From Camelus ferus (taxonomy: Eukaryota), in contig NC_045729.1 in NCBI RefSeq assembly GCF_009834535.1, positions 11,718,001 through 11,782,000 on the forward strand: 64,000 nucleotides of DNA, in the 5' to 3' direction. The notes beneath the pieces were generated by a model. The model made no database searches. It worked only from the letters and a program-made list of their open reading frames with translations, and was not told the DNA's origin. This document shows positions 579 through 19,300 of the stretch, in pieces. Position 1 is the stretch's first letter. Every line of letters begins with the position of its first letter. Both the position numbers and the translations under genes were made by a program.

Positions 579-722
579 ATCCTGGATGACAGGAAGCAAT
601 GGTGGAAAGTTCGAAATGCAAGTGGGGACTCTGGATTTGTGCCAAATAACATTTTGGATATCGTGAGACCTCCAGAATCTGGCTTGGGGCGTGCTGATCC
701 ACCTTACACACATACCATCCAG
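579..722 (+). CDS. EPS8: EPS8 coding exon, C-terminal half of SH3 domain plus linker (ILDDRKQWWKVRNASGDSGFVPNNILD...PYTHTIQ)
   Basis: Acceptor gacag|ATC at 578/579; donor CAG|gtaatt at 722/723; 144 nt, phase 0-0; SH3 signature WWKV...GFVPNN matches EPS8 as recalled. Upstream exons lie before the window. Confidence 0.97.
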
Positions 723-1845
723 GTAATTGTGATTTCTGAGCAGAACCTAACTTTTACAGATTTTTCAAATTCTTCACGCCTAAGCAAGACTTAACTACCT
801 TATATGTCTTAGTCATTTTGAGACTTAATTGGTTATGTATAATTTTTTTCTAGGGTAATTGGAGGGCAGTGGCTAGAGACATAGGGGAGAATTATACATA
901 TGTTTTCTGATTTACTTCTTCAGGAAATTGCTCGAAATGTTTACCACTCAGTGACTGTTTCTCTGAATGCTGTTTTTGTTTCTACCCCATAATATTTCTG
1001 CCATTTGGAGAAAGAGTGTTTCTGCCTCTTCACTCTTCCCAGAGCCCTGCTAGCCAAGGGTCCTGATGGAAGCCAACACCGAGACAGAGGATGGAGTGCC
1101 TGCAGTTGTCTGCACCTGCCTTTGCCCCCATTCTTTTTATAGACTTTGATTGGTAACCTGTTTGCTTGCAACTTTCCAACTATCAAATCTTAACCCCTTT
1201 TTAGAAACTACCTTAACATGACAGAACTTCCATCCAGTTTTCAGCGCCATTATCTTCCTTCAGGCGTGGTGACCCCATGAGACTAGGGCGGCCGCCGTGT
1301 GCTTTTTGACCTGTGACAGGATCTCTAGAGTCAGATCTGCCAGTGGAGACAGAATGGATGGACGGGCCCATGCATCGCCTCTGAACCTGTGTTGGCTACT
1401 TTCTTATGCCCCCAGGAAAATTCTTTTCATTTTCAGAGGCTTGAGCCAAGGATCACATCTGACCCCGTAATAATGTCATAAATGGGTAGAAGCTGAAGCT
1501 GCATAGAACATGCAGTGACAGAGTCAGATCTCATGCCTCAGCTCAGTAAAATACCAACTGTCCAAACCTAGAATTGTGGCCATGTGCTGTCATGACCATT
1601 CATGTAAGTACCTCTGTCCCCCTGGCATTCGAGCCTAGTGCAGTCCTGCACTTAACTGAGGGACTTTGGGCCTTATTAGAATCCAAGAATCAAGCAAACA
1701 TTTCAAATAAAGAATTGCTGTACAGTTTATATATCTTGATAACTTACAGTGATGGCAGTGGGAACTGTTTGCTGTGCTGGCTTTTTGGCTGGCTTGATGT
1801 GCACAGATATTCTCTACTTACTTTATGTTCATCATTTGTCACTAG

Positions 1846-1881
1846 CTGTTGATGCCAAAGAAGGAGTTTGAGTTATTCAAG
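1846..1881 (+). CDS. EPS8: Candidate EPS8 36-nt in-frame cassette exon (LLMPKKEFELFK)
   Basis: Pyrimidine tract ttctctacttactttatgttcatcatttgtcactag, donor AAG|gtacgg, phase 0-0 like the host intron, no stop. Prediction only, no transcript evidence. Confidence 0.65.
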
Positions 1882-2795
1882 GTACGGTCTGCTCCATTTC
1901 CCATGGATTTTTGCAGTGAATTTTCTAACTTAATTTTAACACCTCTTTCTTTCCTAAGTTCTTACATTTCTTATCTTGTGATGTGCTTACCTGACGTAAT
2001 ACAGGCTTCTGTCTGGTTTATAAATGCCAGGCCTTTGTGTTCTTTTCTAGAGAAGTTTTGACTGAATGCCTTAGGGAGCATTAAAGAATGTTGGCTTGAA
2101 ACTATGCATGAAACAGTGGTAGAATATGTCCCCTTTGAGCTCTGTGGGCTGTTTTTAATGTTTAACTCATGATAAGCAATAAGAAAGATGTTCACAAAGG
2201 ACCTCACCAGTGGCCGTGTGTGAGCAGAAGCCCAGAGTTCATATATAAAGTGTTACAAACACTTAGCCAAGTTTGTTTTTATTATAGGAATGGGCAAACT
2301 CCGATAAAATAAGATACCTAAAACTTGCAAATACTAATGTACATCCTAAGTATTTCCCGCCACCTGAGATTTCCTCAGGAGTTTGACCTCTTTTACCTTT
2401 TCCTGTTTACTGTTCAGTCTTGTCTTTTTCCTCAGTTTGGATTCTTGGCTTGGGCCATAAGTTGACTTTTCTGTTCAAAGGTTGCTTCTGTCTAAAACGG
2501 AACCCAAACTATTAATATATATCATATTTAGAGTACTTTTTGAGAACATAAAACCTACTTCTCCTTTCTTGAACAGAGCCTTGGTTTATATTTTTGTCAA
2601 CTTTGGCAAAACCAAGAAATTTTTTAAGTGTTCCCAAGTTTCAGGAGTTTGTTTTGCTGCTTTGTGTAAATAGAAACTTGTGGGGATTGCCTGTTTGGGC
2701 TGTTTCCTTTTAAACTTTTCAACACTATCTGACTGTCTGAAATTTTTTGGATGCAGCTCTGAATGCAGTGATGTACATAGAAATGCGTATAGAAG

Positions 2796-3790: not shown

Positions 3791-4999
3791 GATATGTCCC
3801 GAGGAACAGTGCTTACCCTTACGTCTCGTTGAGGGTAAGGATATAGTTTTTCACTGTATGAGTGCTTAAAGTGACACCTTCCCGGAGTAGGTTTACCGTG
3901 CATTGTGCTGTGTTGATCTGATCAGTCACCATCCTTGGAACTGGATTTTTGCTTTATGCATCCATCCTTGGATTTCATTCATTCTTTCACTTTTTAACTC
4001 ATTCGGGAAAGTAATCCAACTTATGTAATTCACTTAGAAAGCAGACATTTTTTTGAATGGTGGGAATAAGGGAATTAGATGTAAATTATTTCCATGTGGC
4101 ATCTACAGGTCACCAGAGGTTTTAAAAATGCACGGAAGTAGGACTGTTATTTTCACGCACTTATCTTTCCTGTGAAGAAGTATGTATGGATAAGAGCAGT
4201 CCCTAGGTGAGGGCAAGGGCTGCCTTGCCTGTGGCTCACACATTTTTGGTTAGAGATTCTCTTCGGACGCCAGGGACGCACATACCTGGCACCAGTCACG
4301 GCTAGGTGTTGAATTGCCACCCAATGTCCCTGTGAGTCCAAGCTATTTAATAACCTCACATTTGGAGTGATTTTTAACAGCTCTGTAAAGACAGCCAGTC
4401 CCACCGAATGTGTTTCCCCACCATGGCTTCAGCAAAGTTCTAAAAATAAAGGACAGGGAGGTAATAAAGAATTTAGGAAAGATGTGGAACATTAAAAAGA
4501 AGATTGGACGAGACCACAGGGACAAGGAAGTGAATGTTTATGAGAGATTATGGAGAAATGACGATAAATGACATACATGCCTTTTGATGAAAGTTCTGTT
4601 GTAGAGCATTCCAGGGCTTTGCGGTCCTTGAGCTGGACAGCGAATGGGCATCCCGGGTGCCTTCCCCCCACCTGGAAGCCACTGGCCACATCACATTTCC
4701 TGATACTTCTTTTGACTCAACTCCTGACCTCCAGCACTTTGACTGTTCATCTACCAGAATCACTTTCATGCTCTATGCCAAGAGTCAAAACCAGCCTCTG
4801 CCATTCTGTTATTTCCAATATCCTAAGAGGCTTGGCTAAAGAACTCTTTTATTTATTATTAATTACCGAGTCTCTGTGCTCATCATTATTGCAGATATTC
4901 TTACTCTACCAAGATGCAAATAATTTGGAATGTCTGGTCACTGTGGTCCTGTAAATGCAACAGGAAGTCTCCCGTCTGCTCTAGTCTCCTAGCAAGAGA

Positions 5000-5140: not shown

Positions 5141-5313
5141 GGCCAGGGGGTTTCACGATCTCCACAGTCCAGTCTAGACATAAAATTTTGTTACTTTTTA
5201 TTATACGTGTTTAAGTAGCCCTGAATTAACTGTGGCCATGTTTCCTGCAGGGGAATACTAAACCGCTAGCCCTACTAATTTCAGCTCCTGTTATGAATGC
5301 TCTGTTTTTCAAG

Positions 5314-5331
5314 CTTAATCCAGATATTCAG
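5314..5331 (+). CDS. EPS8: Candidate EPS8 18-nt microexon (LNPDIQ)
   Basis: TACTAAT branch-like site at 5273-5279; aaTGCtctgtttttcaag acceptor; weak CAG|gtactg donor; phase 0-0. Confidence 0.4.
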
Positions 5332-6087
5332 GTACTGCTGGGCAGAGAGTGACCGTGTTACTAAAGATGTTTGTATACTCATTCCAGCAGACCAACTTCC
5401 TGATACGATTGAATTGTTAAACAAATTTTTAAAGTTTATCTCAGAACACTCTATCTGTCTATTAATTAGAGGCATGGTTTCTAGACAGGGGTGGTTACTT
5501 TTTTATTCTGCTTCATGTGTTGACATTTTTCCAAATATTTTTTACAATAATTTGAATAATACCACCCTCCTTTCATATATATATATATATAAAACTGCCC
5601 GATATGCGTATGTACAGAATTGTAGAATTTTCTGTTTACCTGCTTACAAGTTCAACTGAAGCTCACTAAAACACACTGATATATATTAATTTCCTTTTGT
5701 AAATCAGATTATTAAGAGAATTAGCCTGACATTTAATGTACTTGTATTCCTTATAAGCTGTAAAAATAGGATGAACCTTTATCTTAATATTTTTAAAACA
5801 ATACCCTGGCACACAAATAGTTACTGAAATACTCGACCCAGTTTATACTGCAGTGAGAGTCTATACAGCTAGTTTCCCTTGACTAGATAGCGGTGGAAAT
5901 TAATTATATATTTACAGGCGCCTTCCCTGGTGGATTTGCTTGATTTGTGGGCAGGTAATTTTACTGTCAGAAATGAATTTGCTCATGTTTTCTGATATTT
6001 GATGTGAAGTATAATTGGTATTCTTTTCGTTCCGTCCCCTATGTTCGATGTTCTCATTTGACGTGATTTGCTGCATTTTCCTAATAG

Positions 6088-6111
6088 CAATTACTTGGCG
6101 AGCTGTCAGAG
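6088..6111 (+). CDS. EPS8: Candidate EPS8 24-nt microexon (QLLGELSE)
   Basis: Long upstream pyrimidine tract; ttTGCTGCattttcctaatag acceptor; GAG|gtaacc donor; phase 0-0, no stop. Confidence 0.62.
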
Positions 6112-6607
6112 GTAACCCACATTTGTTCCCTCAAGGCACTTTCTTTTTAATGGACTTTTTTTGGATTCAGTCTCTGGACTTAACACCCTCCAAATGTTCC
6201 AGCTGTGCCTAGTTTTCACTGCAGAATTCCAAAGAGACTAAATTTAGAGGAAAAAAAAAATGTGTAGGTTACATTTTTAAGAACAGTTCGTTGTTACGGC
6301 TTTGTGTTGCTTGCTTGCATAATTTCCCCTCTGAAGCAGTACCTGCGTGAACCAGGGGTTTATCTCTAGATCACCATCCTTAATCCTGGAGAGTTTCTAT
6401 CAGCTTTACTAGCTAAAGCAACATGACTCATTTGGATTTAATTATCAACAGAAAAATGTATTTTCCATGGGGGCTAGTGATTCTGACTTCTTTCAGGGAA
6501 AGAGAAAAAAACAGATTTTGTTTTAAGCAAAACTTTAAATATATTTGTGGGTGATAAAAGGCAAGAGTTAGGAAGTGACAGTGATGGTACGAAAGTAGGG
6601 CCACACC

Positions 6608-6708: not shown

Positions 6709-7666
6709 TTTCTTTTTGGATTTGGCAATTCAGCACCCTTGGTTCAGGAGATGAAAAGTTCAGGGTAGAGTTCTGCTCTCCAAGACTTCCCAAAGTTCGA
6801 GGCGTCGCCGGCTCCCTGCCTCCAACCAGAAATAACCAGGAGGCAGTGGTGCTGAAGGGAAGAGCAGTGCTTGGGTGGTGAGTAAAAGGGAGTGGAGGAG
6901 ACGGGGAGGGACAGAGAAAAGTGACTCCAAGAGTCAACACTGATTCTGTTTCCTTCACTCAGAGGATGACTCATTAGTTTCCACAGAAAAGCTACCTTGG
7001 TTTCCGTGTCAGAACAGGTCGTAATGATTTGAGGAAGGTACATCCCGCCTTTTCATTCCAGGGGTTGGAAGCATGAGGCAGGAAGGAGGATCAAGAACAG
7101 GGGAAAATATGCAAGTAAATAAAATTCATGACATAATTCATGAAAAATGTTCATAAGGTTTCTCTTTATATTATATATATATATACATACACACATTATA
7201 AGTCTATTCTGATAGGTTAAACTGATAAAGTTGCATTATATGGCAAGGACAGATGACTGAAATGAGGCACAGAAGGCTTGGTGAGCCTGTCTGCAGGCTT
7301 GATAGTGACAGTAACACAGGTATTCAGTTTTCCACAGTATTTTTTGACCGATAGCAAAACACGAGCTGTTCTTGTTTTTCTGAAAGCAAAAAACATGAAT
7401 TGTATCATGGAATGCAGAGCTGACAGCACTTGTTTGTTGAAGCTTTAAAAGCAATCATTTAAACTGACACGTTTGAAATCCGAATGCGAGAATACACTAA
7501 CCCTTCGTGAAATTACGTACGGAAGACATCTTTGTCGAGGGAATCTTGCAGTATACATTAAGCAGATGACTTTGGTGTGTGCTAAGTATCGCATTGTGGT
7601 GATGTTTGCTGTATTTTGATTGCTTGAAATATTTTATTGGCCCAAATATAGGAACATTGTTTTGTG

Positions 7667-7700
7667 GATGATGATGATGGTAATAATAATAATAATAATG
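7667..7700. repeat. Compound (GAT)n/(TAA)n trinucleotide repeat
   Basis: gatgatgatgatggtaataataataataataatg. Confidence 0.9.
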
Positions 7701-9340
7701 TGATAATGAACTCCATTACTGAATATATTAGAAGCGTTCCTAGGCCTTGAGTGCTGAGAGAATCAGCAGTGTCTGTTTCTCTCCCATCCAACTCCGTGGT
7801 TTCCTCTATACATTTCACCCCCACTTCTCCCCTTCCTCCTGGCCTCTCTCCACCTCCCTTCCATCCCCCTCCAAGAAACAGGAGCATTATAAAGGCTTCT
7901 TTCTCCTCTTCTCCCATCCTCGTTTCATGCCCTGCCCACCTTCTCCACCCCGTTGGCTGGTGAGAGGTAGCTTTTAAAGAGACAGCAGAGAGCCAGGGCT
8001 GCGCCCCACGCTGGTTTCCACAGGTGTTACTCATTTGCTCTGAGGGTGCCTGTGACGGTTGTGTGTTGTTTTTTTTAAATCATAATTTAAAAAGTGATGT
8101 GTGTGGTGTTTTATGTTTTTGATCTCTGTGGAAATTGGGGGGGGGGCCTCTTTTAAAATCAGTATTACCTTATATTTGGGCCAATTTAAAAATTAAAAGT
8201 AAATCCTGTTCTCACCAAAGGACCAGATTACCAAAAGGCCTGCTTTTTGTGTTTCATCTGTTAACCCTGAATTTTAGAATAATTAAAATTGTGACAGGAC
8301 AGTATCTAAACTGTACCTAAATTATAAGTCAGTGCTCTGTGTCTTTGATTCTGTCCTTAAAAAATGCCTTTTGAGAATTTGGAACTTAACTCCGATTGTT
8401 ATCTATTAGAATTATTTTGTTGAAAGTTTTAACTATTGTATGCCGTTTAATGGGGAATATCCACAAATACTGTTTTATAATAGCCATGATTTTAAAATTG
8501 CTGAAAGTTTTTATATATTCTATCACATCCACCTTTTTTGAGTACAAATCTCCACATGGAATTTTCTAAGTACATGCTCTGAGATGTAGTCATCAACATT
8601 TAATTAACGACCATCCCATTACCCTCACCACAATCCCGTTTTAATAAGGCAAGTGTCTAAACTTAATAAATTAATATTAAGATGATGGCAGAAAGGGTTA
8701 TTACTTGGAAAAATAAACAGTGTTTTAAAGTTACTTTATTTTAAAGCACAGTTCTTTTATCTACTGAAATATTGTGCCTCTTCTTAACAAATTACTTGAA
8801 AACAGTATAAACACTCTTGAATATAACATACATTTACAATAAGGAGTGAGTAATGCTATGTGTTATTGATATTTAGACTTCCAAGGCAATTAGAAGTTGT
8901 TATTAATGGAAATTATAAAATAATCAGAAATCCTTTGACTTAGCCTGATCTTGTGTGATTCCAGGTTCAAATTTAGTTTTTTTGACATTTATTACTGTTA
9001 TTAATACTGCTATTTGCTTTTGGTGTATCCTTTTGACTCCTTAATTTACATTTGGATTTTGAACATATATGTAGAGCATTTAAAATATAATTTTTAATAA
9101 CTATTATATCATGTAGGATGGGGGGGTTGTGTATTTTTTGTATATGACACATATACATATGTGGGTACAGATGTGGGTACATGGGGGTTAGTGTATGTGT
9201 ATAAATATGCACACTTGCCATGGATTTGCAAGTGAGTTTTACACATAAATAGCCAACAATGTCCCATCAAAATATAATTTGTTTTCCTAGCCTAGGTTTA
9301 CATTTTTACAACTTCAAATTAATTATTTGTCTTTTTATAG

Positions 9341-9563
9341 AAACAAAGGATGGAATATGGTCCAAGACCAACTGACATCCCCTCTGCTCCGTCACCTCCT
9401 CCAACACCAGCCCCCGTCCCGGTCCCCCTTCCACCCTCTGCTCCAGCACCCGTTCCTGTGTCAAAGGTCCCGGCAAACGTTATCCGTCAGAACAGCAGCT
9501 CCAGTGACAGTGGTGGCAGTATCGTGCGAGACAGCCAGAGACAAAAACAAATTCCTGTGGACC
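9341..9563 (+). CDS. EPS8: EPS8 coding exon, proline-rich region (KQRMEYGPRP...PSPPPTPAPVPVPLPPS...QIPVD)
   Basis: ctttttatag|AAA acceptor; GAC C|gtaagt donor; 223 nt, phase 0-1; translation matches EPS8. Confidence 0.97.
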
Positions 9564-19166: not shown

Positions 19167-19300
19167 NNNNNNNNNNNNNNNNNNNNNNNNNNNNNNNNNN
19201 NNNNNNNNNNNNNNNNNNNNNNNNNNNNNNNNNNNNNNNNNNNNNNNNNNNNNNNNNNNNNNNNNNNNNNNNNNNNNNNNNNNNNNNNNNNNNNNNNNNN
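19167..19300. other. Assembly gap (134 N)
   Basis: Run of n between gtagag and gagatt. Confidence 0.99.

Follow-up and report, generated by a model that had tools for sequence, protein, structure and literature searches.

The 36-nt stretch at positions 1846 to 1881 of the window (the whole stretch of 64,000 nucleotides of Camelus ferus DNA that was analyzed) is very probably a genuine, ancient, and frame-preserving alternative exon of EPS8, which adds the 12-residue insert LLMPKKEFELFK between ...PPYTHTIQ and KQRMEYG.... It is the orthologue of exons that are already present in the annotations of other species and not a new kind of element. The same insert is found at the same junction in annotated isoforms of six mammals and, as LMMPKKEFELFK, in teleost eps8a. 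These isoforms bear out the proposal, made earlier from the sequence alone, that EPS8 has an in-frame cassette exon of 36 nt between the exons that start at positions 579 and 9341.

Gene context

The window covers the 3' part of camelid EPS8, which is encoded on the plus strand. The 36-nt exon and a second, 24-nt cassette microexon lie in the same intron, between two constitutive exons:

579..722, plus strand: constitutive EPS8 exon, codes for the last part of the SH3 domain and the first part of the linker, ILDDRKQWWKVRN...DPPYTHTIQ; matches EPS8 proteins
1846..1881, plus strand: alternative cassette exon (very probable), 36 nt, frame 0, encodes LLMPKKEFELFK
6088..6111, plus strand: cassette microexon, 24 nt, encodes QLLGELSE; used either alone or along with the 36-nt exon
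9341..9563, plus strand: constitutive EPS8 exon, KQRMEYGPRP and the proline-rich linker; donor ACC/GTAAGT

The exon at 579-722 is translated as ILDDRKQWWKVRNASGDSGFVPNNILDIVRPPESGLGRADPPYTHTIQ. It ends at 722 and not at 723, with a complete last codon, and its donor is CAG/GTAATT. The translation of 9341-9563 is identical in 74 of 74 residues to EPS8 isoform X1 of Camelus dromedarius (P0313). The intron between these two exons (...PPYTHTIQ on one side and KQRMEYG... on the other) is a phase-0 intron of 8.6 kb. The open-frame listing contains more EPS8 coding segments at approximately 15.1 and 16.2 kb. A run of 134 N at 19167-19300, which is either an assembly gap or a masked stretch, is located 3' of the EPS8 coding segment at approximately 16.2 kb, the last one observed.

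Sequence and splice signals of the 36-nt exon

The exon reads CTGTTGATGCCAAAGAAGGAGTTTGAGTTATTCAAG. It is preceded by ...ttcatcatttgtcacTAG (in a longer form, ...tacttactttatgttcatcatttgtcacTAG) and followed by GTACGG (in a longer form, GTACGGTCTGCT). Frame 0 contains no stops and yields LLMPKKEFELFK, and both other frames contain stops. The splice sites are canonical (TAG/CTG...AAG/GTACGG), and the length of the exon preserves the reading frame in its phase-0 intron. The splice signals around it are as follows:

1815..1821, plus strand: branch-point-like TACTTAC (yUnAy), with the A at 1820, 26 nt 5' of the exon
1822..1845, plus strand: acceptor region, 70% Y over -23..-4, three YCAY motifs, TAG end; near-identical in five mammals
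1882..1931, plus strand: donor AAG/GTACGG and downstream flank; flank conserved in mammals

The core of the branch-like site (ACTTAY or ATTTAT) is retained in 5 of the 5 mammals. The acceptor is TAG, except for CAG in the desman. In birds and in the python, the acceptor tract is weaker (50 to 55% Y) and different from the mammalian one. The donor reads GTACGG in the window; the other mammals have GTATGG or GTATGA, and the birds, python, and tuna have GTAGGG or GTAGGA. In all species compared, +5 is G and +4 is a base other than A. The purine-rich core of the exon, GCCAAAGAAGGAG, is invariant in 9 of 9 species.

The intron was also searched for other in-frame stop-free AG..GT segments of 12 to 60 nt. 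By a crude position-weight score for the donor and the pyrimidine tract, only 1 of 305 such segments reaches the values of the exon, and this segment is the exon itself. The motifs listed in the sequence-only reading, namely TACTTAC at 1815-1821, TGCT at 1770, 1775, and 1890, TGCATG at 2105-2110, and TCAT, TCAT, and TCAC in the acceptor, are all present where it placed them; what the flanking ones may mean for regulation is considered below.

Isoforms in other species

A search with a horse query centered on the junction shows LLMPKKEFELFK at THTIQ/KQRMEYG in the cluster representatives of six mammals:

Ctenodactylus gundi, P0294
Callithrix jacchus, P0295
Galemys pyrenaicus, P0297
Dugong dugon, P0302
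Cnephaeus nilssonii, P0303
Rhinolophus sinicus, isoforms X2/X1, P0298/P0399

In the same search, the representative from Phyllostomus discolor reads LLMPKKEFELFKQLLGELSE. The isoforms of this bat contain neither exon, the 12 residues, the 8 residues, or 12 plus 8 residues. All four combinations are thus found, indicating that the 36-nt and 24-nt exons are independent cassettes and that EPS8 forms with +0, +8, +12, or +20 residues are possible. Gene models of marmoset, gundi, and tuna also show both inclusion and skipping forms. All these are models from species other than camelids and are automatic annotations. The annotation sources that include the exon comprise NCBI XP_ models, deposited GenBank assembly annotations, and the UniProt entry for marmoset.

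In teleost eps8a, the junction reads ...SHTIQ-LMMPKKEFELFK-QLLGELNE-KQ... in two fish representatives retrieved with a downstream-exon query. A tuna query gave 77 parsed eps8a matches, of which 67 contain the 20-residue double insert, 7 contain only the 8 residues, and 3 contain neither; these counts are biased toward inclusion, as the tuna query protein itself carried both inserts. Two fish carry LLMPKKEFELFK, identical to the peptide encoded in the window. The fish query matched only fish proteins, and a lungfish query matched tetrapod proteins with QLLGELSE alone or with no insert.

Among tetrapod EPS8 proteins derived from Logan transcript assemblies, 16 of the 16 parsed full-length sequences are without both exons, indicating that, in assembled transcripts, the skipping form predominates. 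The 12-residue exon is contained in 0 of the 6 camelid EPS8 protein models retrieved. A DNA-pattern scan of metagenomes for the exon yielded a single genomic contig, from a bird, but no cDNA in spliced form. This contig, Ga0065711_1029605 (JGI, 35 kb; L008 4249-11885), represents bird host DNA and contains the EPS8 SH3-end exon, both cassettes, and the proline-rich exon.

Two individual gene models deserve separate mention. The hedgehog EPS8 model P0376 (L001 70406-70447) ends with ...LLMPKKEFELFKV. It continues beyond the donor of the exon and then stops, approximately 2.4 kb short of the contig end. In the camel model P0385 (KAB1254443.1), an 81-nt AG..GT segment at 5251-5331 is used as an exon at the same junction and is translated as GNTKPLALLISAPVMNALFFKLNPDIQ. 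Its conservation is at the background level only, and this segment is probably a mispredicted exon.

Sequence conservation

Orthologous loci from hedgehog, tuna, desman, a vespertilionid bat, dugong, rhea, and python were compared with the window, together with the metagenome bird contig. The exon is intact, with its AG and GT, in 8 of these 8 other genomes (hedgehog, desman, bat, dugong, the two birds, python, and tuna). The Rhea and Python genomes hold an intact exon even though the protein models retrieved for them omit it.

In the nine species, 7 of the 36 exon sites are variable, as opposed to 33 and 34 of 36 sites in the adjacent 36-nt flanks. Five of the variable sites are at codon position 3 and two are at position 1. 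One of the two first-position changes is a synonymous change in a Leu codon; the other, L>M in tuna, is the sole amino acid change and a conservative one. Judging from these alignments, the protein sequence is under purifying selection from teleosts to mammals. The 12 residues are identical in the sampled mammals, birds, and python, and 11 of 12 are identical in tuna, which indicates strong selection and, hence, some specific function.

In a comparison of four mammals, all four agree at 35 of the 36 exon positions, where the intron background is 0.44 (binomial probability, 7e-12). The exon ranks first in conservation among the 36-nt windows of the intron: of 8583 windows, only those that overlap it match its score. 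When the whole intron is aligned in 40-nt windows for the same four mammals, the peak at 1812-1913 (0.975) exceeds even the constitutive exons. In the 50 nt downstream of the exon, the fraction of positions identical in all four mammals is 0.72, again compared with 0.44 for the intron. The absence of a conservation peak had been named in advance as an outcome that would speak against the exon; the peak is there and is the strongest of the intron.

Seven other blocks of the intron are 75 to 85% identical in all four mammals: 2454-2517, 2622-2680, 2714-2771, 4354-4418, 7333-7403, 7611-7672, and 8095-8212. None of them is used as an exon by any annotated isoform, and they are possibly regulatory elements. 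A (TG)n microsatellite is located at 2797-2840, approximately 0.9 kb 3' of the 36-nt exon.

The second conservation peak of the intron, at 6050-6249, surrounds the 24-nt exon. A TGCTGC sequence is found approximately 16 nt 5' of its acceptor. Annotations that contain its peptide, QLLGELSE, come from horse, panda, marmoset, bats, birds, reptiles, amphibians, shark, and lungfish, and at the equivalent place a distant EPS8-like protein (P0037) reads RLVGELSE. From this distribution, the 24-nt exon might predate the 36-nt one.

Alternative explanations

Stop-free AG...GT segments are common enough in this intron (the 305 mentioned above) that one of them might resemble an exon by chance and never be spliced in, and camelid gene models, which are without the exon, would fit such a pseudo-exon. 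However, a chance segment would have to share 12 of 12 residues with the inserts in annotated isoforms of other mammals, display a codon-position pattern of conservation that extends back to teleosts, and coincide with the highest peak of conservation in the intron (P ~7e-12). These three observations effectively refute the pseudo-exon, which is left with practically no probability. It is also very improbable that gene predictors have mistaken a conserved noncoding element of the intron (for example, a regulator of splicing or transcription) for an exon. Other conserved nonexonic blocks do exist in the same intron, and the isoform models are automatic predictions. Nevertheless, nearly all substitutions are synonymous and fall at third codon positions, and conservation stops sharply at the AG and the GT. 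In addition, several independent annotation sources include the exon, as do most of the retrieved fish isoforms (the query itself had the insert). The noncoding element is rejected on the substitution pattern and the independent annotations.

An exon that functions in other lineages might have fallen out of use in camelids, as none of the camelid protein models (0 of 6) carries it. Against this, the camelid copy is identical at the nucleotide level to those of hedgehog, bat, and dugong, and its AG, GT, branch-like site, and pyrimidine tract are all intact. Such an intact and identical copy is not expected had the constraint been lost, and a camelid-specific loss is improbable. A genuine alternative EPS8 exon remains the favored explanation.

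Regulatory motifs

The sequence-only reading further described the flanks as typical of neuron- or muscle-included exons; on this view, the exon is neuron or muscle specific, with inclusion promoted by Rbfox at a downstream TGCATG and with inputs from MBNL (YGCY motifs) and Nova (YCAY motifs). The exon is held to be real in this description as well, and only its regulation is at issue. Two elements of the flanks are important here in addition to the acceptor region:

1765..1778, plus strand: upstream block CTGTTTGCTGTGCT, with two UGCU (YGCY) motifs; kept in 4 of 5 mammals, lost in dugong
2105..2110, plus strand: TGCATG, Rbfox consensus, 224 nt 3' of the donor; not conserved

The motifs exist at these places, conservation within mammals extends to the YCAY cluster and to the 1770/1775 UGCU pair, and regulated exons typically have conserved intronic flanks, as is the case here. 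A survey of micro-exons (PMC4317164) describes those of up to 51 nt as regulated by RBFOX and PTBP1.

On the other side, TGCATG is absent from the aligned site in the four other mammals, which reads TGCCTG in hedgehog, TG-CAT in desman, TGCCAA in bat, and TGCCTT in dugong. A conserved Rbfox site is therefore rejected, and the proposed downstream enhancer turns out to be specific to this species among the five mammals. Elsewhere, GCATG is found at +87 in python and only upstream of the exon in birds, and there is none within 300 nt of the exon in tuna. Viewed in isolation, the short motifs of the flanks do not exceed chance; TGCATG, for instance, occurs in 7% of the 300-nt windows of this intron.

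The claim of MBNL-type flanks fares no better. There are two YGCY motifs in the 100 nt upstream and one in the 100 nt downstream; the intron mean is 1.17 per 100 nt and the 95th percentile is 3, so that this is the background level. TGCT at 1890 is found only in this species among the mammals compared. Assignment to the MBNL-regulated exons, which would call for a YGCY cluster above background, is not supported, and only the 1770/1775 pair is conserved.

The YCAY motifs number three in positions -45..-1, and at least three per 45 nt are found in 4.5% of the intron windows. The number of copies is 2 to 4 in mammals, 0 in birds, and 1 in python, and the cluster is inseparable from the pyrimidine tract. 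According to the published Nova RNA map, a YCAY cluster in the acceptor tract, where the conserved cluster sits, would predict silencing and not enhancement. The exon also differs from SRRM4-type neural microexons, as it is longer (36 nt versus a limit of 27 nt) and the 45 nt immediately 5' of it contain no TGC. An SRRM4-type microexon is rejected on its length and on the missing UGC between the tract and the acceptor.

The conserved regulatory motifs thus comprise only the YCAY-rich acceptor tract and the upstream UGCU pair, and these are conserved only within mammals. The combination of Rbfox, MBNL, and Nova is unlikely to be what controls the exon. Still, the conserved flanks (0.72) make regulation by some factor likely. 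The suboptimal donor, which never has A at +4, and the TAG acceptor would keep inclusion low and open to regulation, and the invariant purine-rich core of the GAAGAAGGAG type, along with the conserved flanks, would assist inclusion. Since this core is also constrained by its coding for KKE, its role as an enhancer is something that we infer.

Protein context and possible function

In the bat isoform P0296, Pfam assigns the SH3 domain to residues 540-588 and SAM_3 to residues 740-799, and the insert occupies residues 609-628. Approximately 20 residues separate it from the SH3 domain, and it falls in the linker toward the C-terminal SAM-like region. An AlphaFold2 model based on an alignment of 66 sequences shows a helix at residues 613-630 (KKEFELFKQLLGELSEKQ) within a disordered linker, at low confidence (pLDDT of ~50, compared with ~40 around it). 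The hydrophobic moment of the 12-mer is matched by a fraction of 0.50 of shuffled sequences and that of the core of the 20-mer by 0.05 to 0.08, which is borderline. A significant amphipathic moment for the 12-mer alone is rejected, as it is no better than in the shuffles. By inspection, the insert contains no exact LDxLLxxL consensus, and the insert region had no match in a sequence search of the PDB. In the literature searched, no EPS8 paper mentions the exon or the function of its peptide.

The peptide, especially in combination with QLLGELSE, would form a short helix in the disordered linker and might serve as a binding or autoregulatory element. It is tentatively suggested, as a model, that the 12-residue exon, alone or with QLLGELSE, could be a helical element for docking or autoregulation, restricted to certain cell types, in the linker between the SH3 domain and the effector region of EPS8. 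In specialized cells such as hair cells, neurons, or brush-border epithelia, it might switch the binding of partners or the capping and bundling of actin.

Implications for EPS8 annotation and biology

The commonly used EPS8 reference protein has approximately 821 to 822 residues and is without the insert. The camelid EPS8 models retrieved miss the coding exon at 1846-1881 as well as a second one at 6088-6111. EPS8 participates in actin capping and bundling and in the control of stereocilia length. It is also a recessive deafness gene, DFNB102 (PMC4022326, PMC9837036). Up to four linker isoforms could be compared with respect to actin, partner binding, and hearing.

Comparison with known systems

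The EPS8 exon resembles the tissue-regulated micro-exons of brain and muscle, as these are described in PMC4317164 and PMC12064062 (up to 51 nt, with RBFOX, PTBP1, SRRM4, or MBNL as regulators). It is likewise small and frame preserving, shows strong conservation of the exon and its flanks, and is located in a linker by a protein-interaction domain. Unlike the micro-exons covered there, it contains no conserved motif for a defining regulator: there is no UGC between the tract and the acceptor, and TGCATG is not conserved.

Another point of comparison is the 24-nt exon. Both exons are found in the same intron, preserve the frame, are conserved and alternative, and contribute to the same predicted helix. 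The 24-nt exon differs in that it is annotated more widely, is shorter than 27 nt, and has UGC motifs beside its acceptor, which the 36-nt exon lacks.

In isoform X1 of eps8a from Thunnus albacares (P0024, L002 12806-12841), an exon with AG and GT is found in the same position and phase. It encodes 11 of the same 12 residues and is followed by QLLGELNE. In contrast to the mammals, most of the retrieved teleost isoforms include both exons (a query-biased figure), and the flanking introns of teleosts contain no regulatory motifs that can be aligned with those of mammals.

The closest match is provided by the annotated isoforms of mammals, in which the orthologous exon lies approximately 0.4 to 1.3 kb 3' of the SH3-end exon. 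The insert-bearing isoforms belong to other species, whereas the six camelid models are without the exon. Nevertheless, both the peptide and the junction are identical to those of the window exon in Phyllostomus discolor isoform X6 (XP_035875201.1) and Rhinolophus sinicus isoforms X1 and X2 (XP_074182071.1 and XP_074182075.1). Likewise, Callithrix jacchus (UniRef100_A0A8I3VWG9) and Ctenodactylus gundi (KAM5262936.1) have an identical LLMPKKEFELFK at an identical THTIQ/KQRMEYG junction.
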